Sequence record: NC_070952.1
Reading direction: 5' to 3' (one strand)
DNA: 64,000 nucleotides
The first letter of the stretch is position 1; the number at the start of each line of letters is the position of its first letter. The position numbers and the translations under genes were made by a program. The notes below the pieces were generated by a model. The model had not been told where the DNA came from, made no database searches, and worked only from the letters and a program-made list of their open reading frames with translations. Below are positions 2,786 through 52,028 of this stretch, piece by piece.

Positions 2786-3151
2786 ATGGCTCATTATTTC
2801 GATATCCATCTCATTGACAAGAATCTTGTCCAAGGGATACTGGTAATTTCTTTTACCGAAAACAGTTCTTTTGAAGAGAAGATGTTTCCTGTATTGCAAA
2901 TTGTTCGTTGTGGTTTCAATGAGGTATTCCGTCGTTATTTCAATGTTAACTCAGAATGGGATACCAGCTATTTTGTAGTCAAAGCCGGTTATATTCGTTT
3001 TCTAATTAAAGAACTCAAGACCGAACTTGCTAAAGGGGACGATGGCGAAATCTATGATCTTGATAACTATAATAAAGTTTTAGCGTGTTTAACCGAGTTA
3101 AGCAAAAACCCGGACGAAGATGCCACCTATCTGCTCTCCTGGGAAAAATAA
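2786..3151 (+). CDS. Hypothetical protein
   Basis: 121-aa ORF, SD AGGGGA, first gene after promoter motif. Confidence 0.7.
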   Translation: MAHYFDIHLIDKNLVQGILVISFTENSSFEEKMFPVLQIVRCGFNEVFRRYFNVNSEWDTSYFVVKAGYIRFLIKELKTELAKGDDGEIYDLDNYNKVLACLTELSKNPDEDATYLLSWEK

Positions 3152-3249
3152 AGGCTTTCTTCAATTAGCAAGATAATAAATTAACAGGAACCCCATCTAT
3201 TGCAACATGTCCCCATCATTCATTATCTCGATACATAAGGATAGATATC

Positions 3250-3729
3250 ATGGCTAAGAAAGTATACACTCAGTACACACTTCCAATCACTGATGCTGAG
3301 AAAGAAGAGATTAAAGGAATTCTCACCCCGATCTACATCCAGAATGAAAAACGTGAAGTGGCTAAACAACTTCACAGCGCCGTTCTTGGGGTAGTAGATA
3401 ACAATCTTCGTCTGCGGGCGCCAAACTACATGTTGGCTGATCATGAAAGCGTTCAGGGTCGTGGTCTGAATACCCAGATCAAACAGGCAGTAACAGATTG
3501 GTATGACGCTCATGTTCTTCGCCTGGGTCCGGATATCAAACCCGAAGATGTCTTTATTCAGATCAGTGAAGACGGTTTGTATATCCTTACCTATTCCGAC
3601 ACTGCAAAAAGTATTATCCTGGATACTAATTTTGAGTTCTCTGTTCCGACGATCAGTTTCCCTGATACCGACATCGGTTTGGTTCGTCAGGTCAATGAGC
3701 ATTTAGAAAAAGAAGCCGCTGAAGAATAA
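3250..3729 (+). CDS. Hypothetical protein
   Basis: 159-aa ORF with AAGGA SD, followed by hairpin. Confidence 0.75.
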   Translation: MAKKVYTQYTLPITDAEKEEIKGILTPIYIQNEKREVAKQLHSAVLGVVDNNLRLRAPNYMLADHESVQGRGLNTQIKQAVTDWYDAHVLRLGPDIKPEDVFIQISEDGLYILTYSDTAKSIILDTNFEFSVPTISFPDTDIGLVRQVNEHLEKEAAEE

Positions 3730-3743
3730 ACCCCGATATGGAA

Positions 3744-3767
3744 AACCGCACCCTTATAGGTGCGGTT
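3744..3767 (+). terminator. Hairpin terminator
   Basis: AACCGCACC-cttata-GGTGCGGTT. Confidence 0.6.
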
Positions 3768-3792
3768 CTAATCAGAGCTAAAGCAAGGAAAC

Positions 3793-4239
3793 TTGATGAG
3801 CATTGCCATTCGAGCTGAAACGTCCATGACGGCAGCTTTTCAAGTGTTGCCGTTTATTGCGACCCTTGATCAATATTATCCCGATGTTTCACACTGGTAT
3901 ATCAATCGTGTCGTTCCTGGTCTGATGACTGGGAATGATAAACTGTTAATTGCTCGCGATGGCAATCATATCGCAGGAGTCGCTCTGGGGAAAAGTACTT
4001 CAGAGGAAACCAAACTTCGTTGTGTCCGTGTTCATCCTGATTACCAGGGTTCCGGTATTGGTGTAAAGCTGATCGACAACATGATTGATCTGTTGGAACA
4101 CGATCGCCCTACTGTTACTGTTTCTGAAGAACTGATTCATCATTATAGTCGTATCTTTGTGAACCGCTATAACTTCAAATTGAATCACGTCTCCAAAGGA
4201 CAATACCGTTCTGGTAAATTAGAGTACCTCTTTAATTAA
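3793..4239 (+). CDS. GNAT-family N-acetyltransferase (probable start ATG 3796)
   Basis: Acetyl-CoA-binding motif A: LRCVRVHPDYQGSGIGVKL. Confidence 0.85.
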   Translation: MMSIAIRAETSMTAAFQVLPFIATLDQYYPDVSHWYINRVVPGLMTGNDKLLIARDGNHIAGVALGKSTSEETKLRCVRVHPDYQGSGIGVKLIDNMIDLLEHDRPTVTVSEELIHHYSRIFVNRYNFKLNHVSKGQYRSGKLEYLFN

Positions 4240-4248
4240 GGAAGTGTA

Positions 4249-4539
4249 ATGAAAACTATTAATATTGATACGTCTTTACTTCGCAGTTTTGTGACCATTG
4301 TTGACGTGGGGACTTTTGCCCTGGCCGCAAAGGAAGTTTGTCGTACTCAATCAGCATTATCCCAGCAGATGGAAAAGCTGGAGAGTGAACTGGCTGTTGA
4401 ACTGTTCCGTCGTATTGGTCGCAATAAAGTCGTGACCAACGAGGGTATGAAGATTTATGATCTGGCAAAAAAGATGTTGGAAATGAATGATGCTATTCTC
4501 CAACAGGCCAGTATCAGTTCAAAACTCACTACTTTATAA
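4249..4539 (+). CDS. Truncated LysR-type regulator, LrhA/HexA/PecT-like wHTH plus linker helix only
   Basis: LLRSFVTIVDVGTFALAAKEVCRTQSALSQQMEKLE...LFRRIGRNKVVT; only 96 aa, no effector-binding domain. Confidence 0.92.
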   Translation: MKTINIDTSLLRSFVTIVDVGTFALAAKEVCRTQSALSQQMEKLESELAVELFRRIGRNKVVTNEGMKIYDLAKKMLEMNDAILQQASISSKLTTL

Positions 4540-4549
4540 AAGGTAAATT

Positions 4550-4954
4550 ATGAAAGTCACCGTTACATTAACAGCCCCTGAACACCACAAAACCAGCCAC
4601 ATGCCGACTGCATTACGTCAGATGTATTATCAGTCTGGTTATGATGAATTGTGTTCATTAATTGACATGACCGGTTATCCTCACAATGGTGGCAGCCATT
4701 CTTGCGCTATCAGTGGTGAACGTGCGGATGTTGTTGGTTGGCTGGATTTGTTCTTGGAAGCTTTCCCGGATACAAAACCGGAGATTGATATCATCAAGCG
4801 CACCATTCGTCGGGAGTTTGTTAATTCTCCATTAACTCATCATCTTCGTATCGACCTGAGCGATTTCACTCGCCAACATGTTTACAAAGGCCAGTTCATT
4901 TCTCGCAAATGGTTTTGGCACGAAGAATATGAGCCAGATTACGTAGAGGAATAA
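4550..4954 (+). CDS. Hypothetical protein
   Basis: 134-aa ORF, SD AAGGT, tight operon spacing. Confidence 0.7.
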   Translation: MKVTVTLTAPEHHKTSHMPTALRQMYYQSGYDELCSLIDMTGYPHNGGSHSCAISGERADVVGWLDLFLEAFPDTKPEIDIIKRTIRREFVNSPLTHHLRIDLSDFTRQHVYKGQFISRKWFWHEEYEPDYVEE

Positions 4955-4956
4955 CC

Positions 4957-5100
4957 ATGAAAGATTTCCTTGAATTTGCTCTTGAAGAAAAGTGGGGATT
5001 TCTGGCATTGTTCACACTACTCTTTCTTTTGTTTACTGTTCCTCCTTATATTGACAGTTTGTTTCCTACTGTCACAATCATTAATATCACAATTGGGTGA
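4957..5100 (+). CDS. Small single-TM protein (47 aa), not in ORF track
   Basis: GAGGA SD; MKDFLEFALEEKWGFLALFTLLFLLFTVPPYIDSLFPTVTIINITIG; fills the gap between neighbours. Confidence 0.6.
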   Translation: MKDFLEFALEEKWGFLALFTLLFLLFTVPPYIDSLFPTVTIINITIG

Positions 5101-5106
5101 TCCCTT

Positions 5107-5487
5107 ATGTCAAAATTGATTAGTTTGTACTTTGATTTAGGACGAGCTGAAATTAAGGCTGAGTCAATTACTGGATTCAGTACTGGATCGACTCAGGGGA
5201 ATGGGTACGTTTATGTTCTTGGGGTAGGAACTCCTATTAAACAAGAATTCGAACGTTCTCGAAAAGATTGGTTGGACTACATCAACCAAGAAAATACCGG
5301 ATCCGACCAGGTCTTTGAATTTAAAGATATGGAAGATAACAATATTGTTGCTCGCCTTAGTGACGTTATCACTATTCGTCAAGAAGGTAGTCATTCATTA
5401 GTGGTAATGAGCGATCATATTCGCATTGAAAGCCGTGATGATTACTGGGACCTAAAAGAGCGTTTTATCAAAGCACTCAGGTCTTAA
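5107..5487 (+). CDS. Hypothetical protein with two tandem ~55-aa beta-rich units
   Basis: 126-aa ORF; both halves show a beta-hairpin-rich pattern ending in a helix. Confidence 0.65.
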   Translation: MSKLISLYFDLGRAEIKAESITGFSTGSTQGNGYVYVLGVGTPIKQEFERSRKDWLDYINQENTGSDQVFEFKDMEDNNIVARLSDVITIRQEGSHSLVVMSDHIRIESRDDYWDLKERFIKALRS

Positions 5488-5528
5488 ACCAAAAGTTATT
5501 CTGCGTACTTAATTTAGAGAGTATCTTT

Positions 5529-5933
5529 ATGAGCGAGCACAAATTTAAATACAACCTGTTAACAAAAGTATGGTCTCGTGTATTAACGAAATCGAATGAC
5601 GGTGATATTCCTTATCAGAACGAGCTCATGTTGACGCCGGCCCCTGATCTTGCCGGTTACCCTAAAACAATGAAAGACATAAAGAAATTAAACTTTGTGA
5701 AATACTTTCATTTTACTCAACCTGAAGAAGTCCTTTATCGACCGACTCTCCCCACCCATGTTATCGATAGTTTAAAGGCTAGCGTCGATGAGGGTATGTT
5801 TGATACCTTGGTCAACTTGAATTTTGATCATCGGTTGATTCACATCAACATGCCTTCTGGTTTCATTGTGGAAGGTAAAGCGTGTGTTCGATTTTGCCGG
5901 GATTTGTTAGAGGGTCCGGACCGTGACTACTAA
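5529..5933 (+). CDS. Hypothetical protein
   Basis: 134-aa ORF in operon. Confidence 0.65.
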   Translation: MSEHKFKYNLLTKVWSRVLTKSNDGDIPYQNELMLTPAPDLAGYPKTMKDIKKLNFVKYFHFTQPEEVLYRPTLPTHVIDSLKASVDEGMFDTLVNLNFDHRLIHINMPSGFIVEGKACVRFCRDLLEGPDRDY

Positions 5934-6714
5934 CAAGATCAAAGATTGGTTCCGTCAAGATAACAAGACCGGGGAGTGGTTCCGTGCTTTGATTCGTGGT
6001 GGTGAAGGTTACAGTCATCAAGTGGAGATCTTATTAGCCCCGGCTGTTAATACCAAAACAGAATGGGATAAAATCGGTGATGTCTTTATCACTCGCCATG
6101 ATGTCCGTTTTATCAAAGAGAAAGATAAAAGCCGCTGGACTCATCATCTCCCTGATGACGTACATGATAACATGTACCGCAACATCGGGCCCAATAAAAC
6201 AGACTTCCTGTTTGAAGGAAACATCTACTCACTGATTGACTGGAATAAGTTTACAAGAAACGATAATCAAGGTTGTCCATTGTCGCTTTGTCGTCGTGGG
6301 TTTAAATGGTATTACGAACAGACCCATCTGATAATGGGTAATGCCATTGTCCGGGAACAAACAGAAGAACAACCCTTCTTATTAATGAACGCGATTCACA
6401 ACACACCCGACATGTTAATGATTGGCGGTGTTGCGGTACGCTTAGTTAACGTTGATTTACTTATCTATGGCTATTATCATATTGTAACTGGGTATGTTTG
6501 TTTTAACCTGGATACAACGATGACTGTAACTGGTGAGCGCCATACCAGTAAGTTCTCTCAACGACTTAAACCGGACTGGCAAAAAGATCTGATTGCTTTC
6601 ATTGAAACGATGAAGGTAAGAGGGGACATTATCGACAGTATCGAAACCAGTATTAAAACGATGGTCGATACCGCGAACAGCAGTCTAATGACTTTCAACC
6701 TTAGCGAATTGTAG
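5923..6714 (+). CDS. Hypothetical protein
   Basis: 263-aa ORF overlapping upstream stop. Confidence 0.7.
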   Translation: MTTNKIKDWFRQDNKTGEWFRALIRGGEGYSHQVEILLAPAVNTKTEWDKIGDVFITRHDVRFIKEKDKSRWTHHLPDDVHDNMYRNIGPNKTDFLFEGNIYSLIDWNKFTRNDNQGCPLSLCRRGFKWYYEQTHLIMGNAIVREQTEEQPFLLMNAIHNTPDMLMIGGVAVRLVNVDLLIYGYYHIVTGYVCFNLDTTMTVTGERHTSKFSQRLKPDWQKDLIAFIETMKVRGDIIDSIETSIKTMVDTANSSLMTFNLSEL

Positions 6715-6722
6715 GAATAAAC

Positions 6723-7181
6723 ATGAAAGAAAAATATGAAGGTATATTGGGAGTAGTATTGCCTGTTCCGTATCTTCGCGATTCAAATACCATCGTTACT
6801 GCGCTTTTTATTGTGGCAGAAGGATCGTTGATTAAATCGGCCGATATTGGTTTTGCTATTAATAACAATAACGAACCAAACATTAAGCTCACTACTAAAC
6901 CAATTGAGAAATCGATTGAAGAGTTGTTAGAAGGATGGGTTCCATCTGGGCGTTGTGGTGAGCTGGATTATTTCCAAGATCAATTGGACGAACTCCATTG
7001 GCTTGGTTACGCGTACATCATGAAAGCGCTGCCAAGTAACTATACCGGCAAGTTACCGCTGGTCATCATGTCTCACCCTATGTACGCCAATCTGGATACC
7101 TGGGAAGAGATCTCTACTGAAGCACTGGTTCGTGAAATCAACGACCGGATTGCTGTTGCCGAGGTGGAAAATGATCGCTAA
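6723..7181 (+). CDS. Hypothetical protein
   Basis: 152-aa ORF, SD AGGA. Confidence 0.7.
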   Translation: MKEKYEGILGVVLPVPYLRDSNTIVTALFIVAEGSLIKSADIGFAINNNNEPNIKLTTKPIEKSIEELLEGWVPSGRCGELDYFQDQLDELHWLGYAYIMKALPSNYTGKLPLVIMSHPMYANLDTWEEISTEALVREINDRIAVAEVENDR

Positions 7182-7641
7182 GTTTTTGTTTGGAACTAAC
7201 CGGATAATTCCGAATGGATTGGAAGATGCCGGAGATTCAATAAAGTATAAAGATACCTTGTTGATGGTTCGCAAACACGATATCTTCCAGCATGCAGATA
7301 TGGCCAAGATCTATCGACTGACTCCGTCCACAGGTGGATTTGTTAAACGCCTTGGGATTCAAGGTGAAGAACTCTTTTACGGTGAATCAGTTTCTTGTCG
7401 GGTACAAACCGATGACTCGATGCTGAAACTCTACCGTGCATTAACTAAACACGGCGACTGGTTTAAACATACGTACGTTTATAATGAGCGTACTCCGTTT
7501 ACTGTCTTCTGTGGTGTTCCGAAAGACCATTACCCTTCTAGCATTGTAAACGATATTGAATGGGTGTCGGTTGAATACAAAGAAATTAAAAATCTGATGC
7601 GAGAAGAGATTCAGACCAGTGCATCTGGATTAGGTTGGTAA
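7171..7641 (+). CDS. Hypothetical protein (start MIAKFLFG)
   Basis: GAGGTGG SD before ATG 7171; track ORF 7132..7641. Confidence 0.65.
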   Translation: MIAKFLFGTNRIIPNGLEDAGDSIKYKDTLLMVRKHDIFQHADMAKIYRLTPSTGGFVKRLGIQGEELFYGESVSCRVQTDDSMLKLYRALTKHGDWFKHTYVYNERTPFTVFCGVPKDHYPSSIVNDIEWVSVEYKEIKNLMREEIQTSASGLGW

Positions 7642-11064: not shown

Positions 11065-11264
11065 AAACCTGGCAGCTATTTCTCCTTCTCTTTGCCGCAA
11101 TTTCTCTAGTCTTAGCGATTGCGATAAGGGTATGGAATAGTCTACACTGGTCAGATCAAAATAAGATTAAAGAGAAGGCTATGATCTATGGCGTCTTTAT
11201 TGTACTTACCAGTGCGGCCGCTTATATCATAGCGTCCATTATTAAATGGAACATGACTCATTAG
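11055..11264 (+). CDS. Small 2-TM membrane protein 5
   Basis: Start MEIETWQ after AAGGT SD; two hydrophobic segments. Confidence 0.7.
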   Translation: MEIETWQLFLLLFAAISLVLAIAIRVWNSLHWSDQNKIKEKAMIYGVFIVLTSAAAYIIASIIKWNMTH

Positions 11265-11272
11265 GAGCTGAT

Positions 11273-12454
11273 GTGAAAAATAAATACGAAAAGTGGTACA
11301 TGGAAACTTTGGCTTATATCTTAGCCAATGGTCAGCGTCGTGGTGACCGTACCGGTACGGGTGTTATCTCCATGCCGAACATTCATTACACGCACGATCT
11401 TCGTGAGAACTATCCGGTAATGTTCAGTCGTTACTTCAATATCTTCCAGCCCATTACTGAAATGAATTGGATGATGTCAGGTAGTTCTAATATCCAATAC
11501 CTGAAAGACAACGGTTGTCCTTTCTGGAATGGCTTTGCTACCAAAGACGACATGGTTAACAAGATTGAACTTAATCGTGTTGAACGTTTGAAAATCCACG
11601 CTAACGATCGCGGCGTGCCGTTCACAGAGATGATGGCGGCGATGGCGGTTGTACCTGTAGCAGAAATTGATGAACTTCTGGATAAACACGAAGTTCCTAA
11701 CATGGTTGACGAGAAAGTCCCAAATGGTGAACTGGGACCTGTCTACGGCGTGATGTGGCGTAACTGGCCTAATCCTGACGGTACAACGTTTGATCAGCTC
11801 CAGTATGCGTTTGATGTTCTTAAACGTGATCCTAACAGTCGTCGTGTGGTTGTGGATTGCTGGAACCCATCGTTCTTACCGGATCCAAAGATCTCTCCTC
11901 GTGAGAATGCTGCTAAAGGAAATATGGCTTTAACTCCATGTCACTTTAACTTCGGCTTCTATACTTGGGAACTTTCTCCCCAAGAACGCTATGGGCTTCT
12001 TCCTACTCTTCATGAAGGAGAACTTACTGATAAGATCTTCATGAGACCTGGGGAAATAGAAGATAACTGGGATAACTTGTATAAGGAATACAACATTCCT
12101 ACTCACTATCTGGACATCAGCTTTACGATGCGCAGCAATGACTGGGTGCTGGGTCAGCCGGCTAACATGAATATGTATTCAGCTTTACTGATGATGTTCG
12201 CTCAGCAACTGAATATGATTCCACGTTATGTTAACTACTGGGGTTGGGATTCTCATATCTACACCAACCATCTGGAAGGCGTGGCTGAACTTATTCGACG
12301 TTGGGATACTGGCGAGTACAATGATCTTGAACTCAAGCTGGATCTGAATAAGAAGCAGGATCTCTACAGCTATCACCACACCGACTTCATTCCTGTCACT
12401 GATGCGTTTGAACTGTTGATGGGTGAACGAATCAAATTCCCTATTGCCATCTAA
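11273..12454 (+). CDS. thyA: Thymidylate synthase with large insertions
   Basis: RGDRTGTG, GPVYGVMWR, MALTPCHF (catalytic Cys), MRSNDWVLGQPAN, DSHIYTNH; GTG start after AGGAG. Confidence 0.96.
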   Translation: MKNKYEKWYMETLAYILANGQRRGDRTGTGVISMPNIHYTHDLRENYPVMFSRYFNIFQPITEMNWMMSGSSNIQYLKDNGCPFWNGFATKDDMVNKIELNRVERLKIHANDRGVPFTEMMAAMAVVPVAEIDELLDKHEVPNMVDEKVPNGELGPVYGVMWRNWPNPDGTTFDQLQYAFDVLKRDPNSRRVVVDCWNPSFLPDPKISPRENAAKGNMALTPCHFNFGFYTWELSPQERYGLLPTLHEGELTDKIFMRPGEIEDNWDNLYKEYNIPTHYLDISFTMRSNDWVLGQPANMNMYSALLMMFAQQLNMIPRYVNYWGWDSHIYTNHLEGVAELIRRWDTGEYNDLELKLDLNKKQDLYSYHHTDFIPVTDAFELLMGERIKFPIAI

Positions 12455-17324: not shown

Positions 17325-18887
17325 ATGTCTGTATTAGCCGAACAAACTTTCACCAACCAACAAGACACTCGTGACATTGTAGATGAAGTCATGCAGAATG
17401 CATTTGAATCTGTGTGTTCCACTATGGGTCCGAATGGTCGCTATGTGGTGATCAATCAGACTAACCGTCCAAAGGTTACCAAAGACGGTGTGTCGGTTGC
17501 CAAGGCGCTGGACTTCAACGAAGCTCGTCGTAATCTGATTGCCAAGATTATCACCGAACCTTCTATCAAAACTGATAATGAAGTGGGTGATGGTACAACG
17601 ACTACTGTATTCCAGACTTTCCAGCTGTATAACAAATTCAAAGACAAGATGAGCTTTAAGAACTTGCGTTATCTGGATCAATTGATCCGTGACGTGAAAG
17701 CCCATATTGCCACATTGATTATCGAATCCAAAGTAACGGACGATAAGTTCCGTGCCATGTTGATGACGTCTTCGAACTATGAAGAAAGCATCGTTGAAAC
17801 CATTCTGGAAATCTTCTCCAAGTACGACAAACCGAACATCAGTTTGATCCGTACGCCGGCGTTGAAGAAAGATGAAATCGATCTGACCAACGACATCTTC
17901 TTTGAAGCGGCATTTGGTTTTGATCAGATGAACAGTCGGCTCGGGTCTAAAGGCTTTGTGGTGGATCCACACGGTGCACTGATTGTGTTGGTCGATGACA
18001 CTATCCGCACGGTCCATCCTGATTCATTGTCGCTGATGTCCAATGTGGATTATGCTCGTCCGGTGTTGTTGGTTGCGCGTAACTTCGAAAGTAATGCGTT
18101 ACAAGAAATCAACCGCTATAACTCCGAGATCGATCGTCAAGCGATCGTCCCAATTCAGTTGTCTGCGGCGGGTCGTTTGGGTGCAGCACTGTTTGAAGAT
18201 CTGGGTACTTTACTCGGGGCTAAACCGATCTTTGATTTACGTACCGTGGGTAAAACTGACGTCTATTCTAACGAAGCTGGTTTCGTCATTAAAGCCCGCG
18301 GTATTTATATCGATGCTTCTCAGGAATATGTTGTTCCTGCAATTGAAGAAATCGTTAAGCCGCTGGATGAACGTTACGAAGCTCTGAGTGTCGTAGAACG
18401 TGCAACAGTTATCGGTAATGTCCTGTTCAGTCGTATCAGTCGTCTGCGTGCCAATAACATCACTATCCGTGTAACCGGTGTAACTGATTCAGATACCTCT
18501 GAGCGTTATTATCGTTACGAGGACGTGATGAAAGCAGCGCGTACCGGTTTGCAGTACGGTGTTCTTCCGGGCATCGGTTATGCTTATATGGAAGCGTCTA
18601 AGTTCGTTAAAGCGTTACCTCAACAATCTGATGAGGGACTCGAACAGCTACGCCAAGATCTTGCGGATCTGTTGACCTATCAATATACCTATCTGACCGG
18701 CATCGAACAAACCGATGCGGACTACGGTAAATATGTTGATTTGGTTACCGGTGAAGTTTCTGATCAACCGACTGCGGTATTTGATAATGCTGCTGCAACG
18801 ATGATTGCACTTGAGGGCGCGTGGGCAACTGCGAAAACTTTGAGTAAGATCAACAATGTCATGGGTCGTTCTAATCAGAGCTACTAA
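17325..18887 (+). CDS. groEL: GroEL-like phage chaperonin (OBP gp246/EL gp146 type)
   Basis: STMGPNGRYV, VTKDGVSVAK, GDGTTT, RYEDVMKAAR, GVLPGIG; no GGM tail. Confidence 0.95.
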   Translation: MSVLAEQTFTNQQDTRDIVDEVMQNAFESVCSTMGPNGRYVVINQTNRPKVTKDGVSVAKALDFNEARRNLIAKIITEPSIKTDNEVGDGTTTTVFQTFQLYNKFKDKMSFKNLRYLDQLIRDVKAHIATLIIESKVTDDKFRAMLMTSSNYEESIVETILEIFSKYDKPNISLIRTPALKKDEIDLTNDIFFEAAFGFDQMNSRLGSKGFVVDPHGALIVLVDDTIRTVHPDSLSLMSNVDYARPVLLVARNFESNALQEINRYNSEIDRQAIVPIQLSAAGRLGAALFEDLGTLLGAKPIFDLRTVGKTDVYSNEAGFVIKARGIYIDASQEYVVPAIEEIVKPLDERYEALSVVERATVIGNVLFSRISRLRANNITIRVTGVTDSDTSERYYRYEDVMKAARTGLQYGVLPGIGYAYMEASKFVKALPQQSDEGLEQLRQDLADLLTYQYTYLTGIEQTDADYGKYVDLVTGEVSDQPTAVFDNAAATMIALEGAWATAKTLSKINNVMGRSNQSY

Positions 18888-43154: not shown

Positions 43155-46100
43155 TCAAACTTTGACAATTGGTTGGCTGGCGCCATTCCTTTTCAAGCTA
43201 TCCCTGATTTCCTTAAGAACCGTTAACTGTTGAGCATTGATCTGTGCACCTACAGAGTCAGCCACATTCATTTGATCCGGCATGTTAATCGCCGGAACAG
43301 GGGCTGGAGCCGTTGGAGCAAGAGATGCTGGAGCAGCAGTCTTAGTCGGAGTACTCGTGCGTGCTGGAGCCGAAGCACCGGCAGTTGGAGACCCACTTGG
43401 ATTATCAGTGGACGTGGAACTTGTGACAGGTGCATTGTCGTTAGTGGAAGCAGGTCCTGACGATGTCACCGGACTACTCATTGGTGACGCATTCGCCGTT
43501 GGTGGAGGAGTTCCTGCATTAGATGGTGCAGAAGATTTCTCTGCTTGGTCTAACAAGGCTCCTGTTGCTCCCGGTTTAACAACTTTGGTCTCTGTACCGG
43601 TTCCCATCTTGTCTGCTGGAACATTCTTATCCGCGGCTTCTGGAACATCCGGGGACTGATTGTTCATCGCATTCTGATCACCTGCTTGGGCCGAAGCGTC
43701 GTCAGCATTATCTCCACCTGGAATGTTTAATGAACCACTCCGCAGTTTGTTGAGATAATCATTATAGAAAGCCCGACGTTCGTCTGTTGCAGGAACAGCA
43801 TTCCCACCGTTAATACCGCGCACCGCTGTATCGAAGTCACCGGTTTTCGCAATCGACTTCATTGCGGCACTGTTCTTCAAGAACCATACAGCTGATTCAG
43901 CCATAACGTTTGGATCTTCAGAAACCAATTCAGGATGTGAGACAACATCAATACCTGATGCTTTCTTGAAGGCTTCGTAGTTTGATTTGCCCGTTAACTG
44001 GAACAACCCACGACCACGGTAATCCCATCCGTCTTCGGGTTTCGTGTTACCCAACGCTGGACCTTTTGGTGCCCGACCATAAACATACATTGCTCGTTCA
44101 ACAGGAGACATCGCAGCAACTTTCTGTGCGGTAGCCGCATCAGGGATGTTCTTGAAGTACTTGAGTAATGTCGGCGCTGACCAGTTGGTATTCTCAACGG
44201 TGCTTTGATAACCACCCGTTTCCTTTCTTGCCATTGCTAAAGCAAGTGCCAGGGTTTTATTATCACGGAAGCCTGCTTTCACGAGATGGTTCAGCATTAA
44301 CTGATCACCTTGTTCAAGCGACATCTTGATTCCCTTATCGGAACCGGCTTTCTTGATAAACTCAGGGTTAAAGCTTTGATTCGCATTTCCCATGAATTGA
44401 CCTGCTGAACCTGCAGGACCGCCCGGTGCACTCATTGTTGCATTTGGATAATACCCACCGGCTGCAGAGCTGCCTCCCGAGGAACGCAGTGGACCGCCGC
44501 CTGATGCAAAGCCTGTGGCACCTTTACCGTACACCGCATCCATGATGGATTTAGTCTGGGCATCGCTTCCTACTCCATTTGTGGCTGTCGGGGTAGAAGT
44601 ACTGGTGGCTTCACTTTTCGCTTTCTCCAATTCAGGGTCTTTGATCGCCGCTTCTTTGGCTTTCGAATCCAATATCTTCATGTACTTGTCAGCACGGTCT
44701 GGATAGGTTCCTGAATCAGAATCTGGGAATGGTGACGCATTAACGGACCAGATAGGTTGCTGGGTATCGTTAACGGTAACAATCAATCCTAGAAGCTTAC
44801 GAGCGATAATGGCTTTGTTGGTATCAGAAAGAGAACGCCACGTTTTACCAGGTATCCCACCACGAAGCTGTACCGTTTGTTTGCAGTATTCCATCAGTGT
44901 CGGTAAGAAACGATCACGGAACCAAATCATCCAGTTGTTCTTGGATATGATGTTTCTGTCGACGACATGGAAGCTTGCTTTAAACAATTCCAGCAACTGG
45001 TTAGACTTACCAGTGAAACGTGCATCTTTGCCAGTCACCATGATGAAGCTTTCAGTATAACGTTCTAAACGCAACACCGCTTCAACACGCCAAGGAACAC
45101 TCTTGTCATTACCGTACACCGCCAGACGTGCTAAAGTAAAGGCATCAAGATTACCGTCTTTACCGTACATGTCAGAGATATCGATTTTCGTTACATCGGC
45201 TGGAGAGGTGATATCATCAACTGCTTGTGCCGAAGCACCTGCTGCTTTCTGATCCATCCCAGGAGTAATGGCAATCTCAGGCATGCTGGTTGTGTCACCA
45301 GACTGACTGTTATCTTGTTTGGCTTGTGCACTTGCATCTGCGGTCATTGATTCAGGTGTCTTCTCCGGTGGAGCTGGCATTTCCTTTTTCAATTGATCAA
45401 ACAGTTTGGCGACGGCATCACGAGTTTGTTCAGGACCCATGGTTGCTTCTTTATCATCGATACGGACATCGATAGAATAAGGAGGCGGGTTATAACTGGC
45501 AATGCCTCGTTGGGCTTGTTCAACAACTTTCACTGCATCGTAAGACTTAGAGTTATCAAACTCAACAATGTCTCCCATACGTTCGGTTGCAACGGCCACG
45601 TTATAAATCATGAACACCGGTTTAAAGCGTGCCATGAACCACGTACCGATTGCACTCTTGTCATTAAACTTACTGATCCCACTGTTAGCGAAGTCGTCCA
45701 CCAGTTTCCCGGTTGGGGTATTCGGTTTCAGTGACGCCTTGTTATCTTTAATGACCACGTATTGATACAGTTGATTTTCCAGTGCCATAATACGACGAGC
45801 CAAATTACTACTCGTATCATGGACACCGTACATTGCCAAACGGATCTTTCTTTGGGTGGTGATCTTGTTCGCTGCTTTCTCAACACCAGGGGCGTTGTTA
45901 ATAACAGGTTTGCCGTCTAGTGCGGATTGTGCTGCATCGGCTTTTCGGCGATCAGTGTAGAAGGTACCATCAGAAGTCCAGAACAAGCCAATGTTGTCTA
46001 ACTTCTCATATCCGTCTGGACCCAACACACCCTGAAGTGCGCTCTTAGCCAGGCTGCCTTGAGGAAGCCAATCGGTAACAGTATTGACTACCTTATCGGT

Positions 46101-49100
46101 GGCTGTTTGGTGACGACCAGTTACTGGATCAGCATCGCCAATATCCAAGTCCTCTGTTCCAGTTTCATAATCCGCTGGATCATTATTGAAGATCTCGTCA
46201 ACAGCCATTCCACCCAGCGCAGCGTAAGCAGATCCTTTTGCAAAGCGACCTAATTTACCGCCTCTTCTACGACCCGCTCCACGGTTACCAGCCCGGTTCC
46301 TTCTTCTAGCACCTTGACCACGTTGTTCAGGTTCAGGACCTATCCCGCCGCCAGCACCTCGTCTTCCTCCGCCTAAAAGACCACCGGCCAGTTTAGTGAA
46401 GCCCCATTTCATGAGTTTGAAGATAGGAGAAGAAATCCCCATTACACCTGAGAAGAGTGCGGTACCAATTTTGGCTAACCGCCCAGTGGATTTCAGCAAG
46501 CTACCGAAGACCAGACTCCCGATTGTTCCGATAGGGTTTTTAAAGAGTTTGACACCAAAGCCACCTAACGCTAAGAACATGTCTTTGATCTTACCAAAGA
46601 ACCCTTTGCTCTCGCCTTTCTCTTCTTCCCCACCCATGCCTTTGGTATTTTTAGCGATCTCAATGATAGCTTCATTTACCTTGTGCTTTTCTTCGGAAGC
46701 GGCTTCTTTCTTCTTCCACTCCAGTGAGTTAAGACGAAGACCTGCACCATCAGAACCACCGGTCATTTTAGAACGGATTGCTTCAGTTAGGTTATCGGTT
46801 TCCATTGGGATACCGAAGTGCTGAGACATCATGCGGTAGATCAAATCCAGTCGGTGTTCAACCCCAGAGTTTCCAGAGCCTTTCGAACCACCCACGCCGC
46901 CAGCGGCACTTCCTGGAGCAGTTGCTTGGCTTGAATAACCAAATCGTCCCAAGAGTGAATTGAGTCCAGCTTTAGCCAACCCCGCTGCACCGCCAACCAC
47001 GCCAGCAACACCAGCGCCCATATTGCGTACAGCCATACCTGAGGCCGTGACCAAACCTGATTTGTATTCCTCTTCACTAACCAGTTGATTACCTTGGTCA
47101 TCATAGACTGGCCCATTGATCTCATTCCATCCAGTGATTGGTTTAAAGTTTCCTGATTCATCACGAGAGTAATATTCACCGGCTTTGAATTTCGCTGCCC
47201 TGAGAGCAGGTTCTTTCTGACCTTTAATATAAATGTCTTGTTGATAAACCAGATCTTTACCCGTGTCAATAATAGAACGAATACGGCCAAGAGGATCGGC
47301 AAGGTTATACGCACCCACAATGCCGTCACGCACACGACGCAGTCCATTCAACGCAACGGCACGACCATCAGCACCAAAGATCTTACCGGCCAGCTCACGC
47401 GCTCCAATGACCGCACGTGTTGCGGTATCGAAGATCGGTCCGCGAATGTCGTTCCACGTTTTAATAACCCGTCGAGTGGCAGCATCCAAATATTCACCTG
47501 CTTTTAACTTAGCAGATTTCAGAAGAGGTTCACCCTTTTCATCCAGGATATCCTCATCGTCATTTGGAGCAGCAGTAGACGTGTTACCGCTTCCGGTACG
47601 GTTACGACGTTGGTAGTGATCAACTGCAGCACCGAGTGCTAAACCGCCGGCGGCAAGCGCTCCTGAGAGCAGGAAGTTCTTACTAGTGGCAGCGGCACCT
47701 ACGGCACCCAGAATCCCACCCAGGACCATTGGGTTGCGACTCATGATGAAGTCCATCCCTCGACCCATCATTCCCGTTGGAAGCTTACTCTTGATTTTAT
47801 CTAAGAAGGACTTTTTGGCTTGTTCTTCTTGACGTTCTTCAGAAGGTGTTCCCGCTGTTCCTGTGGTGAGTTTCCCTGCCTTGGCTAACTCCAGGAGACT
47901 TCCCATTAACGATTCGATATTCTTGCTGGTACTGAAAATACCGGCATTGCTATCTTTGATCTCAGTCAGTGCACCGGTCATGGTATCGAAATTAACCATT
48001 GAGGCGTTCTGACCAGGGGTCGCTTCTGGCTGCGGTTGGTTCAAGGTTCCCAGGCGTTCATTCAACTGCTGCAGGGTTTCGTTTAATCCGTCCATTGGGT
48101 TAACAGTCGGACTACTATTACCACTGGTACGCAGACCACCTACCGTTGGGTTCTTTTTACCACCTTTCGGAAGGACACCACGCAGAGCAGGATCGTTCGG
48201 GTTATCCATGTATTGACCAATGCGGTCATGGAAAGCCTGATTGTTGATCTTGTCAATGCCGTTCTCGGTATAGATCACTCCAATGTCACGGAGCATCTGT
48301 TCGTTACCGGTGGCACGCAACAAGTCAATACGTTCTGCTACATTCGGGAAGTTGGACTTCAAGTTCTCTGCAGAAGCAGATGCGTTGTTCAGACGTTCAC
48401 GGCCTTCTTTCGTTGGCATCTTGCTCATCTGTTTCATACGCTGGAAACTATCAGAGCTGTTGAACGTGCTGACATCCTGAGTCGTAATACCAAAGTGACG
48501 CATCAGCGCAGCATGCACTTCCTTCTGAGCAGAAGGACTCATCCCTTTGATGTCGCCTAAATAGTAGTACGGGTTAAACCCCATCTCGGCATCAATGTCT
48601 TTCGCTACTTGCTGAGCAAACGCTTTACGAGTAGACGGAGACAAGAACTTATCAGGGTCAATAGAGTCAACCAGAGATAATGATGCTTGAGCGTAACGTT
48701 GGAATTCACCGTGAGGCATGAGGTCGGCTTGTACTGATACACGACGTTGAGAATCCGTTTGGAATTCACCTCGCATATAGTTATAGCTTTCCGACTCTAC
48801 ATTGTCCTTTCCTGTGCGCATCTTTTCTAAGATCAAGTTTGTCTTAGAAATCAAACCCGGCAACACTTCGTTTAAGGTGATGTTGTTAAGTTCTTTCCAA
48901 ATACCTGGCTGGTTAAGATCTTTAACATCACGTTTCTTCAACGTGTACTGTGTACCACGGGTTTTGTTTGCATCACCCATCAGTTTGTTAATGGCTTCTT
49001 TACCGCGGTTAGACGCAGCGTTCAGAGCCGTCCAAGCCGCTTTAGGAAGAGGTTTCTTACCCGGCGGTAATTCAGAGAGGTAATGTTCATAATCGGCATA

Positions 49101-50369
49101 CTTCATTTCATCCATAGGCTGGTAGTTCTGAGCCATATAGTTCAACATCCCAGTACCTGATGTCGATGCGTATGAAATGACGTGACCCACATCAGTGAGC
49201 TTGTCGATTTGTTCCTTTATATACCCGGCTTGTTCTGGGTAGGTTTTTGACAACTTGTCAATGGCCTTTTTACCCGGACCCCGTGTAAAGAACGCAGGCA
49301 ATTGATCCACCGCAACCCCAGCGATCATATTACCCAAGATGTTGCCAACCAAACCGCGGGACAGAGACGTGTCACCGGCCATGTCAATACCATCACTGAT
49401 ATTGTTGGCAAGCGACCCTAATACCCCGTAAGCTTCCTTACGGTTATCCGCACTGAACCTGTCACGGAACATTCCCGTCAGACCACCCATCCTTTTACCG
49501 ACGGTATTAAAGACACGCTGACGCATATAAGCTTTCGATGCGGTAAACGTGCTGGTCTTTTGGTAATCACTCATACCGGTGTATTTTGTGATTTTCTTCA
49601 GTTCGGTTACTTCGGCGTGAATGCCGGCTTCCATGAACTTGTAGAACTTGGCACTGTTCACATAAGAACGGGCAGTTAAGTTCAACTGGGCTTGCTGAAT
49701 ACGCGCATCAACATTACGTTGATAGTTAAGCATATCCCGCATTGCGCCTTCAATGTTCACCAACTGACGATTACCTGCCCCTATAGAAGCCTGTAACGCG
49801 CTGGTAGCAGCGACAGTCATTGAGTTAAGAGAATCACCCAATGAAACGAACATCCCCGACTGAGCGTTCATAGAGGTGTTTAACGCACCCTCTACATCAT
49901 CTTCAGTTGTACTGTCAACACGTGCATCAAAACGATCAGACCGTGTTTCAGACCTTTCCCACATGGAGAAATCTTTGGAACTGAAATTCCCCAATCCCTC
50001 ACTCAGAAAACCTGGGAGTTTATCCCCCATCTTCTTATTTATGTGGGACGCAATGTTTTGCAAGGATTTCGCTGATTCCGCATTTTCTTCTCTGAACTCG
50101 GTAGCGAGCTGACCAAGACGATCATTAATGAATGATGCCTTGTCGAGCGCATTACTGAAGCTACTAGGTAAGATAGTGCGCATGCTTCGAAAACGGGCAG
50201 GGGAACTTCCCACTGTCTCGTCAACGACGCCTGATAAGAATCCCGTTGCGAATGATCTTATAAAACCTTTTCCTTTGAATGGATCCATATCGAAATCCAT
50301 ATCAAAGTCCATATCGCCGCCAAAGGGATCATTATCCCAATCGAGCCCGATATCGTAATCATCGGCCAT
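43155..50369 (-). CDS. Tail tape-measure/virion-associated lysin with GH19 domain (phiKZ gp181/OBP gp276-like)
   Basis: 2404 aa; GH19 motifs ARKETGG, YRGRGLFQLTGKSNY, VRGINGG near the C-terminus; adjacent to vRNAP genes. Confidence 0.9.
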   Translation of the reverse strand: MADDYDIGLDWDNDPFGGDMDFDMDFDMDPFKGKGFIRSFATGFLSGVVDETVGSSPARFRSMRTILPSSFSNALDKASFINDRLGQLATEFREENAESAKSLQNIASHINKKMGDKLPGFLSEGLGNFSSKDFSMWERSETRSDRFDARVDSTTEDDVEGALNTSMNAQSGMFVSLGDSLNSMTVAATSALQASIGAGNRQLVNIEGAMRDMLNYQRNVDARIQQAQLNLTARSYVNSAKFYKFMEAGIHAEVTELKKITKYTGMSDYQKTSTFTASKAYMRQRVFNTVGKRMGGLTGMFRDRFSADNRKEAYGVLGSLANNISDGIDMAGDTSLSRGLVGNILGNMIAGVAVDQLPAFFTRGPGKKAIDKLSKTYPEQAGYIKEQIDKLTDVGHVISYASTSGTGMLNYMAQNYQPMDEMKYADYEHYLSELPPGKKPLPKAAWTALNAASNRGKEAINKLMGDANKTRGTQYTLKKRDVKDLNQPGIWKELNNITLNEVLPGLISKTNLILEKMRTGKDNVESESYNYMRGEFQTDSQRRVSVQADLMPHGEFQRYAQASLSLVDSIDPDKFLSPSTRKAFAQQVAKDIDAEMGFNPYYYLGDIKGMSPSAQKEVHAALMRHFGITTQDVSTFNSSDSFQRMKQMSKMPTKEGRERLNNASASAENLKSNFPNVAERIDLLRATGNEQMLRDIGVIYTENGIDKINNQAFHDRIGQYMDNPNDPALRGVLPKGGKKNPTVGGLRTSGNSSPTVNPMDGLNETLQQLNERLGTLNQPQPEATPGQNASMVNFDTMTGALTEIKDSNAGIFSTSKNIESLMGSLLELAKAGKLTTGTAGTPSEERQEEQAKKSFLDKIKSKLPTGMMGRGMDFIMSRNPMVLGGILGAVGAAATSKNFLLSGALAAGGLALGAAVDHYQRRNRTGSGNTSTAAPNDDEDILDEKGEPLLKSAKLKAGEYLDAATRRVIKTWNDIRGPIFDTATRAVIGARELAGKIFGADGRAVALNGLRRVRDGIVGAYNLADPLGRIRSIIDTGKDLVYQQDIYIKGQKEPALRAAKFKAGEYYSRDESGNFKPITGWNEINGPVYDDQGNQLVSEEEYKSGLVTASGMAVRNMGAGVAGVVGGAAGLAKAGLNSLLGRFGYSSQATAPGSAAGGVGGSKGSGNSGVEHRLDLIYRMMSQHFGIPMETDNLTEAIRSKMTGGSDGAGLRLNSLEWKKKEAASEEKHKVNEAIIEIAKNTKGMGGEEEKGESKGFFGKIKDMFLALGGFGVKLFKNPIGTIGSLVFGSLLKSTGRLAKIGTALFSGVMGISSPIFKLMKWGFTKLAGGLLGGGRRGAGGGIGPEPEQRGQGARRRNRAGNRGAGRRRGGKLGRFAKGSAYAALGGMAVDEIFNNDPADYETGTEDLDIGDADPVTGRHQTATDKVVNTVTDWLPQGSLAKSALQGVLGPDGYEKLDNIGLFWTSDGTFYTDRRKADAAQSALDGKPVINNAPGVEKAANKITTQRKIRLAMYGVHDTSSNLARRIMALENQLYQYVVIKDNKASLKPNTPTGKLVDDFANSGISKFNDKSAIGTWFMARFKPVFMIYNVAVATERMGDIVEFDNSKSYDAVKVVEQAQRGIASYNPPPYSIDVRIDDKEATMGPEQTRDAVAKLFDQLKKEMPAPPEKTPESMTADASAQAKQDNSQSGDTTSMPEIAITPGMDQKAAGASAQAVDDITSPADVTKIDISDMYGKDGNLDAFTLARLAVYGNDKSVPWRVEAVLRLERYTESFIMVTGKDARFTGKSNQLLELFKASFHVVDRNIISKNNWMIWFRDRFLPTLMEYCKQTVQLRGGIPGKTWRSLSDTNKAIIARKLLGLIVTVNDTQQPIWSVNASPFPDSDSGTYPDRADKYMKILDSKAKEAAIKDPELEKAKSEATSTSTPTATNGVGSDAQTKSIMDAVYGKGATGFASGGGPLRSSGGSSAAGGYYPNATMSAPGGPAGSAGQFMGNANQSFNPEFIKKAGSDKGIKMSLEQGDQLMLNHLVKAGFRDNKTLALALAMARKETGGYQSTVENTNWSAPTLLKYFKNIPDAATAQKVAAMSPVERAMYVYGRAPKGPALGNTKPEDGWDYRGRGLFQLTGKSNYEAFKKASGIDVVSHPELVSEDPNVMAESAVWFLKNSAAMKSIAKTGDFDTAVRGINGGNAVPATDERRAFYNDYLNKLRSGSLNIPGGDNADDASAQAGDQNAMNNQSPDVPEAADKNVPADKMGTGTETKVVKPGATGALLDQAEKSSAPSNAGTPPPTANASPMSSPVTSSGPASTNDNAPVTSSTSTDNPSGSPTAGASAPARTSTPTKTAAPASLAPTAPAPVPAINMPDQMNVADSVGAQINAQQLTVLKEIRDSLKRNGASQPIVKV

Positions 50370-50396: not shown

Positions 50397-52028
50397 ATGA
50401 GCAGAAAACCTACTAACTTTACTTTATTAGATCCCAATAAAGTGCCCTGGGCTTTAATGAAGCCAGTTACGGTAGCGGATGCCTTTGAAGGGCAAACGAA
50501 CAACCTTAATGATCAAGGACTTTACTCCACAGAAATATTTGGTCGAGTGGGAACAGCGGAACGCGACACAACGATTTCTTATATTGATGTTACGCTCCCT
50601 ATCTTTAACCCAACCTATTTCAAAGCACTGATTCAATTGAAGAGTCTGTACGGTGAAATCATTAAAGGTCGCGCATACGCTACCTGGGATCCAGTTGAGA
50701 AGGATTTCATAAAATCCAATCTCATCGAGGGCGAGACAGGTTATGCTTTCTTTATGTCTCATTTCCATGAACTCGATCCAAAGCAGAACGAATCATTTAA
50801 ACGTAAGCAGAAGATCGACCTTGTTGATAAATTTAAATCACAAGCGCTATCTAGCAACGTCATTGTTATTCCGGCCGGTATCCGTGATATTGAATTCACC
50901 CCGAACGGAACAGGAAGTGTGGTCACGGAGAACGAGGTCAATGACCTTTACCGTAAACTGATCTTCCGCAGTAAGTCTTTGAACATCAAAAACATCGACA
51001 CCACCGACCCGGTGTATGATGGGATCCGTTGGGGACTCCAGGAAAGCTTTAACAACATCGCTGACTTCTTCTTTAATATGCAAGAAGGTAAGCGTGGCTT
51101 TATGCAACGCCGTATGTCACGCCGTGCCATCTTTGGTGCAACGCGTAACGTTATTACCTCGCGTAAAGTGTCGGTTGAAGATTGTGATAATAATGTCACC
51201 GGGGATCCTAACTCAACCATTATCGGACTGTTCCAGGCTTTGCTCGGGTTTAACCTGGTGGCGATCCATCAGTTAACCAACGGGTTCTTGAACGAAGTCT
51301 TTACATCGGGAATGGGAACCGCTCGCCTGGTTGATCCTAAAACGTTGAATGCAGTTTATGTGGAAGTGGGTCCTTCGGTTGTTGACAAGTTCACATCCAG
51401 TGACGGACTGACCTCGATGTTCAACGGCTATGGCTCACCAAACCTGCGTAACCGCGATATTAAAATCTCTGGACATTACTTAGGGTTAGTTTACGATGAC
51501 GGCAAAGACGTAATGCTCTTGCACGATATCGATGACTTACCTGAAGGTCTGGACAGGAAACTGGTTCGTCCGGTAACGTACACGCAATTCTTCTATATGC
51601 AATGTGTTCCTGAAATTGAGAAGAAGATGTTGCAAGTTACCCGATACCCAATTACTGGGATAGGTTCTATATATCCAAGTCGTGTTTTTGTCATGCCAAC
51701 GAACTCCACATCAAGTTCCCGTAACTTGTTGGATCTGGACGGGCAGACAGTCATTACCAAATTTAACTACTTCCCTACTTATACGAAGAACCCCAGTTAT
51801 TTCGATGGGATGTCAATTGCCAACATCCGTATTGGACTGGCAGGTGCTGACTTCGATGGTGACGCCTTATCAGCAAACTCCATCATGGCAGAAGACTCCA
51901 TTCGTGAAGTTGAGGAGTTGTTTGGTAAACGTGACTTCTATATTTCAGGTTCCGGGGATTTCTTATACGACCCGGTACAAGAACCGCATGAATTCCTTTT
52001 ACGTTCATTAACTAACGGGCTAGCCTAA
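50397..52028 (+). CDS. Virion RNA polymerase beta' subunit, catalytic N-terminal part (phiKZ gp180-like)
   Basis: GLYSTEIFG, GKRGFMQRRM, catalytic ADFDGD. Confidence 0.95.
   Translation: MSRKPTNFTLLDPNKVPWALMKPVTVADAFEGQTNNLNDQGLYSTEIFGRVGTAERDTTISYIDVTLPIFNPTYFKALIQLKSLYGEIIKGRAYATWDPVEKDFIKSNLIEGETGYAFFMSHFHELDPKQNESFKRKQKIDLVDKFKSQALSSNVIVIPAGIRDIEFTPNGTGSVVTENEVNDLYRKLIFRSKSLNIKNIDTTDPVYDGIRWGLQESFNNIADFFFNMQEGKRGFMQRRMSRRAIFGATRNVITSRKVSVEDCDNNVTGDPNSTIIGLFQALLGFNLVAIHQLTNGFLNEVFTSGMGTARLVDPKTLNAVYVEVGPSVVDKFTSSDGLTSMFNGYGSPNLRNRDIKISGHYLGLVYDDGKDVMLLHDIDDLPEGLDRKLVRPVTYTQFFYMQCVPEIEKKMLQVTRYPITGIGSIYPSRVFVMPTNSTSSSRNLLDLDGQTVITKFNYFPTYTKNPSYFDGMSIANIRIGLAGADFDGDALSANSIMAEDSIREVEELFGKRDFYISGSGDFLYDPVQEPHEFLLRSLTNGLA

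Follow-up and report, generated by a model that had tools for sequence, protein, structure and literature searches.

The question raised by this locus is whether a small gene of a jumbo phage, which encodes nothing but the DNA-binding domain (DBD) of a LysR-type transcriptional regulator (LTTR), is directed at the host, serves the phage's own transcription or is a relic. The gene, gp203, lies in a 64,000-nucleotide stretch (the window) of Erwinia phage AH04 (MZ501267.1), a jumbo phage of 262,639 bp in the genus Meadowvirus whose host of isolation is Erwinia billingiae and which was obtained from horse-chestnut leaves (PMC8567782). Window position 1 corresponds to position 186,001 of the record, to which window positions 3700-5000 are 100% identical. 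In GenBank, AH04_203 is labeled only 'HTH transcriptional regulator'. It is not discussed in the genome announcement of AH04 (PMC8567782), and a literature search found no paper describing it. The gene and its immediate surroundings are as follows:

2786 to 7641, plus strand: gp200 to gp210, a tightly packed cluster of co-directional small genes that includes gp203 (annotation, open reading frames, synteny in relatives)
3796 to 4239, plus strand: gp202, a GNAT N-acetyltransferase gene directly 5' of gp203, separated from it by a 9-nt gap (Pfam, a weak RimI-like NCBIfam match, synteny)
4238 to 4244, plus strand: Shine-Dalgarno-like AAGGAAG, 4 nt upstream of the gp203 start codon (read from the sequence)
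4249 to 4539, stop included, plus strand: gp203 (AH04_203), a DBD-only LrhA-type LysR protein of 96 aa (open reading frame, annotation, Pfam HTH_1, NCBIfam, PDB, purifying selection)

The reading frame of gp203 starts with ATG and ends with TAA at 4537-4539, and since it is open only from 4240 onwards, an N-terminal extension is impossible. The next gene (4550-4954, 10-nt gap) is unrelated; it belongs only to a PHROG of unknown function and has no Pfam match. The preliminary description of this DNA had reported a 96-aa frame with its own Shine-Dalgarno sequence, a clean stop and an unrelated next gene, which was confirmed by the list of open reading frames, the AAGGAAG motif, the TAA codon and the PHROG assignment; the sequence letters quoted there are present in the window. 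On the 5' side, synteny identified the GNAT gene as a conserved neighbor of the LrhA-type gene in most relatives. A scan for sigma-70 promoters and terminators around gp203 gave no enrichment over shuffled sequence.

To describe the architecture of the protein, profile searches were combined with an AlphaFold2 model that was built on seven family members and reached a mean pLDDT of 88. Residues 10-66 match Pfam HTH_1 (PF00126, E=5.3e-16) and no Pfam match was obtained in gp203 beyond this domain. The predicted secondary structure consists of helices at residues 8-20, 23-29 and 34-48, strands at 53-56 and 59-62 and a long helix at 64-95, which gives three parts:

4270 to 4434, plus strand: winged helix-turn-helix (HTH), residues 8-62 (AlphaFold2 secondary structure)
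4348 to 4392, plus strand: recognition helix, residues 34-48 (AlphaFold2; LrhA DNA-contact residues mapped from PMC12968389)
4438 to 4533, plus strand: linker (dimerization) helix, residues 64-95 (AlphaFold2; the most constrained part within the phage family)

Using Foldseek, the model was matched to LTTR DBDs together with their linker helices, and its own linker helix aligned with those of BenM, CbnR and OxyR. Superposition on the DNA-bound fragments BenM_DBD (4ihs) and CbnR_DBD (5xxp), which comprise 87-93 residues, gave a TM score of about 0.9 relative to the target. The end of the reading frame coincides with the end of the modeled linker helix. When the effector domains of six LrhA proteins were used as tblastn queries against the window and the related phage loci, no remnant of an LrhA effector domain was detected (all E>1). 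Of the features of an LTTR, gp203 thus has the N-terminal winged HTH and the linker helix and lacks the C-terminal LysR_substrate domain, and is therefore a derivative of an LTTR and not a complete one. According to the model, gp203 contains no parts other than a winged HTH and an entire linker helix. The proposal of a DBD-only protein that ends at the domain boundary is upheld by Pfam, AlphaFold2 and the tblastn search alike.

We then asked to which LysR subfamily the domain belongs. The best NCBIfam match of gp203 was the LrhA model (NF011673) with 88.3 bits, compared to 65.2 bits for the next model, although this score is far below the equivalog cutoff of 530 bits. In the PDB, LrhA (7yhj/22xo) was matched with 79 bits and the next entry with 40.7 bits. 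When 1.84 billion cluster representatives were searched exhaustively with HMMER, no cellular protein exceeded about 55% identity to gp203; for each of the ten best full-length matches, the LrhA model gave the highest score by a wide margin, and their effector domains, which lie outside the query, are related to each other. Whereas a scan of bacterial genomes with the single gp203 protein gave no match, genomic relatives were found by an alignment-based scan in which one genome per species was used and the best 80 matches were kept. About 75 of these 80 are Enterobacterales lrhA orthologs of 300-316 aa. Among them, LrhA of Erwinia oleae, E. tracheiphila and Pantoea scored 598-604 bits and thereby exceeded the NCBIfam cutoff of 530, from which it follows that the host genus has a true LrhA, as judged from congeners, E. 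billingiae not being among the best 80 loci. By these comparisons, gp203 is assigned at the subfamily level to the LrhA/HexA/PecT/PigU/RovM type and not to generic LysR proteins, as had been proposed from sequence likeness; the best NCBIfam, PDB and full-length matches all point to LrhA.

Nine LrhA residues have been tested for DNA binding by mutagenesis (F28, R37, T38, Q39, S40, Q44, R48, R63 and K65; PMC12968389), and the PDB match and the alignment place phage residue n at LrhA residue n+5. In this register, gp203 has the identical residue at eight of the nine positions, and none of these eight varies within its family of eight members; the ninth position (LrhA R48) is a conservative lysine in AH04 and arginine in all seven relatives. 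Of the 124 LrhA-like cluster representatives nearest to gp203, only 19 have the complete set of eight, verified LrhA proteins among them. The retention of these residues is our strongest argument that gp203 may still read LrhA-like DNA sites.

To understand if the gene is maintained by selection, its close relatives were compared. Six further clusters (at 90% identity) are 63-80% identical to gp203 and all of their proteins are exactly 96 aa long; the contigs in which these relatives are located are syntenic and include an IMG/VR genome of 266,753 bp. Pairwise dN/dS within the 96-aa family is 0.03-0.21, with synonymous sites near saturation. Constraint is highest in the linker helix, which is 86-90% identical within the phage family (pN about 0.06, pS saturated) compared to 71% for the winged HTH, and at residues 65-77 the eight members do not differ at all. 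The substitution pattern thus indicates that gp203 is a functional gene under purifying selection and not a pseudogene; decay into a pseudogene, which the preliminary description had named as an outcome that would undo its proposal, does not agree with this dN/dS range and the uniform lengths. That gp203 is a functionless, decaying fragment of a captured LysR gene is accordingly extremely improbable. Reduced symbiont genomes (Arsenophonus, Symbiopectobacterium, Regiella) do contain short LrhA-like frames that look like products of decay, but besides the dN/dS values and the fixed length of 96 aa, the own Shine-Dalgarno sequence, the missing effector-domain remnant and the coincidence of the frame end with the helix end all contradict decay. 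The chromosomal short frames of 100-149 aa in L016 (Arsenophonus), L019 (Symbiopectobacterium), L091 (Kluyvera) and the P0016 cluster (Regiella) are probably lrhA decay products and not selected short forms.

Conservation has its limits within the wider lineage. Syntenic, more divergent copies of 100 and 101 aa exist, and the counterpart of LrhA R37 is no longer arginine in P0008 and P0009, which are syntenic and more divergent; for P0009, LrhA is no longer clearly the best model. Therefore, LrhA-like specificity is not kept across the whole lineage.

The distribution of the gene was surveyed with the help of relatives retrieved via its neighbor gp207, and 13 loci were compared in all, AH04 and 12 relatives. 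The LrhA-type gene is the sole short LysR gene in AH04, L096, L003 and L009, and occurs alongside a 92/93-aa LysR paralog in L002, L005-L008, L010 and L097, while in L098 and L099 its slot is empty and only the paralog is present. The LrhA-type gene is accessory, and at least one DBD-only LysR gene is found in 13 of 13 loci. L096 (Logan SRR31860988) is a metagenomic contig in which, over the gp199-gp208 region, the HTH gene is 100% and gp207 99% identical to that of AH04; AH04-like phages have therefore been sampled again elsewhere. The gene was absent from the distant named relatives of AH04 and from all other records of the phage collection searched, and only one contig with a close relative was present in IMG/VR. 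The paralog was located as follows:

L005, 3131 to 3412, and L002, 4678 to 4959: 93-aa DBD-only LysR paralog, also present in L006, L007, L008, L010 and L097
L098, 698 to 976: 92-aa form of the paralog, also present in L099

There is a 4-nt overlap between the 93-aa paralog and the beginning of the GNAT gene, and conservation of the paralog is 90-98% across those loci in which the LrhA-type gene is found as well. The paralog does not resemble LrhA: it scores best with the model of another LysR family (56.6 bits versus 32.9 bits for LrhA) and its recognition helix is different.

Next, the origin of gp203 was analyzed, as it had been suggested that a lytic jumbo phage captured the regulator of its host and cut it. 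Identity to Erwinia LrhA is 53% over residues 4-81 of gp203. Within a set of 67 LrhA proteins of Enterobacterales, the identity of the winged HTH is 96%, compared to 55% between the phage and Enterobacterales LrhA. The GC content of gp203 (41%) is near that of the phage (44%), with 49-53% in Erwinia lrhA. In neighbor-joining trees, the 96-aa clade was supported in 183 of 200 bootstrap replicates and the deeper nodes were unresolved. On the 84-86 alignment columns of this phylogeny, the phage clade could not be placed inside or beside the Enterobacterales LrhA clade. The most frequent sister of the 96-aa clade (118 of 200 replicates) consisted of 87-aa frames of Erwinia psidii and E. tracheiphila together with P0035:

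L036, 3001 to 3264: 87-aa LrhA-like frame of Erwinia psidii
L080, 3001 to 3264: 87-aa LrhA-like frame of E. tracheiphila

Like gp203, these P0035-type frames are DBD-only and have LrhA as their best match (68 bits), and with 56% and 54% they show the highest identities to gp203 among the best 80 genomic matches kept. They differ in being shorter, in a linker helix that is only 35-44% identical and in residing on a chromosomal island instead of a jumbo phage. They are AT-rich (38% GC compared to 51% for the locus), and their neighbors encode TraF_2, a lipoprotein, a phage-type DNA methyltransferase (phrog_954) and small PHROG proteins. Judged by this gene content, the setting is a conjugative or integrative island with the same kind of domain-only LrhA copy. 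The low identity to LrhA, the phage-like GC content and the short-form sister together indicate that the acquisition was an old event. Short LrhA-like genes may circulate among mobile elements, in which case the phage need not have made the truncation itself, and gp203 may have been acquired already truncated. Capture and trimming of the host gene by the phage, at 50-56% identity to LrhA proteins that share 96% with each other, is thus not supported.

A further short gene was found in two other contigs. P0012 (91 aa; L011, 8001 to 8276, and L012, 8001 to 8276) is DBD-only, scores best against LrhA (78.8 bits) and lies on phage-like contigs of 58-61 kb, near genes for DHFR, a 917-aa protein, a Porin_8 protein and an Rv2179c-like exonuclease. 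P0012 may represent a separate instance of a DBD-only LrhA-like gene.

A phage-borne DNA-binding protein could act on phage DNA. In this reading, which is possible though doubtful, gp203 binds phage operators and controls phage genes or itself, and its likeness to LrhA reflects ancestry. Upstream of the gene cluster, alignment revealed candidate elements for such a role:

2540 to 2785, no strand assigned: divergent intergenic region between the gene of the ribonucleotide reductase small subunit (minus strand) and gp200 (plus strand) (alignment)
2682 to 2696, no strand assigned: single-copy perfect 15-bp palindrome just 3' of a conserved TATAAT-like box, a candidate operator

The mean column identity of the intergenic region is 81% across seven phages and exceeds that of the surrounding coding DNA. 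In L009, the most divergent relative, both arms of the palindrome are changed symmetrically and the palindrome is kept. Conserved AT-rich blocks in the same region may be phage promoters. It is plausible that the palindrome is an operator for some phage DNA-binding protein. By analogy with DBD-DNA structures, a span of 15 bp would fit a winged-HTH dimer in successive major grooves. The second DBD-only LysR paralog of the relatives, with its other recognition helix, would agree with several related regulators in these phages, and the loss of LrhA-type residues in the most divergent copies also speaks for a phage-internal role. However, nothing links the palindrome to gp203. It also occurs in genomes of the L098/L099 type, or at the least in every locus that has the region, whichever set of paralogs is present. 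It does not recur beyond chance in the 64-kb window, so that any phage regulon would comprise a single promoter region, which counts against control of phage genes, and it is not enriched in the lrhA promoter regions of 70 Enterobacterales loci.

The phage also appears to encode a multisubunit RNA polymerase of its own, a weak match that speaks against gp203 as a regulator of phage genes. The genes concerned and two further large genes of the window are:

17325 to 18887, plus strand: Cpn60/GroEL-like chaperonin gene
52028 to 56392, plus strand: gene for a 1454-aa protein with a weak match to RNA polymerase beta (Rpb2_6, E=8e-4, below the Pfam cutoff)
43155 to 50369, minus strand: frame of 2404 aa (7,215 bp), with a length equal to that of the 'biggest gene' of the AH04 announcement
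11246 to 12454, plus strand: thymidylate synthase gene (402 aa)

The Cpn60-like gene and the weak polymerase match suggest that AH04 is a jumbo phage of the EL/OBP-like kind and has a multisubunit RNA polymerase of its own. Such a polymerase would mildly favor a host-directed role of the LysR-type domain. A literature search on AH04 as a nucleus-forming phage found nothing. The biggest gene of AH04 was described as an endolysin with a chitinase domain (PMC8567782). The Pfam match of the thymidylate synthase covers residues 17-381, compared to 248 profile positions, and therefore includes about 115 extra residues inside the domain.

The position of gp203 next to gp202 raises another possibility, namely that it is an antitoxin-like or autoregulatory partner of the GNAT protein in a toxin-antitoxin-like or enzyme-regulator module. 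The order '92/93-aa HTH, GNAT, (0-1 gene), LrhA-type HTH' recurs among the relatives, and the 4-nt overlap described above joins the 93-aa gene to the GNAT gene. On the other hand, L009 carries the LrhA-type gene without any GNAT gene, and in L003 and L005-L007 an extra gene separates the two. The GNAT protein shows no sequence similarity to solved GNAT toxins in the PDB or to PADLOC families, its only match being the weak RimI-like one. A partnership of this kind is therefore very unlikely. The toxin-antitoxin reading of the GNAT neighbor as such was rejected, as no toxin or defense similarity was obtained in the PDB (by sequence) or with PADLOC.

We subsequently analyzed how a DBD-only protein might interfere with host LrhA. 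One suggestion had been a dominant-negative subunit; gp203 would then heterodimerize with host LrhA via the linker helix and the winged HTH and poison its tetramers. The residues R17, R79, F84 and N85 of the LrhA DBD-DBD interface have been tested (PMC12968389). R12 (R17) and N80 (N85) are kept in the phage proteins and R79 is replaced by lysine (K74), which counts in favor of this suggestion; F84 corresponds to M, I or V at position 79, and the interface residue D14 of LrhA is S, A or N. Moreover, the phage proteins and Enterobacterales LrhA share only 27-37% identity in the linker helix, while LrhA proteins share 89-93% among themselves and the phage family 86-90%. Poisoning of LrhA tetramers is thus disfavored and appears quite unlikely. 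A helix that is strongly constrained and yet the part of the protein least similar to LrhA is more in keeping with a private homodimer than with pairing to LrhA, and for this reason we rank a competitor or mimic of LrhA above a dominant-negative subunit.

Our preferred reading, which we hold tentatively, is that gp203 is a stand-alone LrhA-type DNA-binding module and an effector-blind competitor of host LrhA. By analogy with engineered LTTR DBD fragments, gp203 would self-dimerize through its lineage-specific linker helix, and the dimer would occupy LrhA-type paired half-sites on host DNA. Lacking an effector domain, it would form no tetramer, bridge no two sites and respond to no signal, and it is this lack from which competition with LrhA irrespective of effectors would follow. 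At promoters that are activated by the LrhA tetramer, gp203 would act as an antagonist, whereas at promoters that are repressed by simple occupancy it would mimic LrhA. The outcome would be a shift of the LrhA regulon during infection; in relatives of the host, this regulon includes the Rcs system and exopolysaccharides (EPS), fimbriae, surfactant and motility, control of RpoS, and CRISPR-Cas.

Which of these targets could matter to the phage was judged from studies of LrhA proteins. Shutdown of flagella through flhDC, the target initially put forward, rests on E. coli and is weak for Erwiniaceae, as in Pantoea stewartii, a member of the host's family, the flhDC promoter is not bound by LrhA (PMC5723134). 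The sites bound there are the lrhA promoter itself, rcsA and genes for fimbriae and surfactant, and LrhA represses its own expression; the LrhA operator is poorly defined (PMC5723134). LrhA-controlled CRISPR-Cas, which had been overlooked, is an attractive alternative class of targets by analogy. The Serratia LrhA ortholog PigU represses type I-F and type III-A CRISPR immunity against a phage 100- to 1000-fold (PMC10810281), and in E. coli the cas operon is activated by LrhA in the form of a tetramer that bridges DNA (PMC12968389). A dimer made of DBDs alone could imitate repression of the PigU type and could antagonize activation of cas of the E. coli type. No statement on CRISPR-Cas was found in the genome paper of E. 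billingiae.

The role of the LrhA family in setting the CRISPR-Cas level of Enterobacterales has only recently been shown, and the same family controls surface structures that phages use. Domain-only copies on a phage and on a conjugative-type island of the same host genus suggest that mobile elements exploit LrhA as a regulatory node. A wider generalization, in which DBD-only LrhA mimics are a class of counter-defense or host-takeover factors of Erwiniaceae jumbo phages and conjugative-type islands that occupy LrhA operators, is in our view unlikely. If it were true, functions wired to LrhA, among them the expression of CRISPR-Cas and receptors of the surface or EPS type, would be switched off or unbalanced at entry, and this would amount to transcriptional anti-immunity through domain-level mimicry of a global regulator.

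Among known systems, the closest in sequence are LrhA of E. coli (PDB 7yhj, 22xo) and its orthologs PigU (Serratia), HexA (Pectobacterium/Photorhabdus), PecT (Dickeya), RovM (Yersinia) and LrhA of Pantoea/Erwinia, which belong to the same winged-HTH subfamily as gp203. Identity between cellular LrhA and gp203 amounts to 50-56% across residues 4-83 and to 71% within the recognition helix. In contrast to these full-length proteins, gp203 has no effector domain and hence would form no tetramer, its linker helix has diverged and it is phage-borne. In length and fold, gp203 resembles the engineered LTTR DBD fragments BenM_DBD (4ihs/3m1e), CbnR_DBD (5xxp), YhaJ DBD (9irz), AceR DBD (8wpa) and CysB NTD (5z4y), with 87-96 aa and TM scores of about 0.85-0.9. 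Several of them were crystallized on DNA. Whereas those fragments are laboratory truncations, gp203 is a natural gene kept by selection, which suggests that it is a natural example of a LysR DBD without a sensor domain; if it binds LrhA sites, it would be a compact tool to define the LrhA operator.

As summarized in PMC12968389, phage-encoded AmrZ homologs repress CRISPR-Cas (Borges et al. 2020). The concept of a mobile-element copy of a host immunity regulator is the same, here on the strength of sequence likeness: gp203 is a homolog of a host regulator, LrhA/PigU, that controls a defense system, CRISPR-Cas. The AmrZ homologs belong to another fold and family, are full-length and have a shown function, whereas gp203 is domain-only and has a proposed function. 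We infer that gp203 works as a host-regulator copy that has been reduced to a single domain on a mobile element. A truncated antagonist of this kind is also represented by H-NST of genomic islands, an H-NS-like protein with which a mobile element uses a single domain of a global regulator to interfere with that regulator in the host. H-NST keeps the oligomerization domain and lacks the DNA-binding domain, and gp203 is the reverse.
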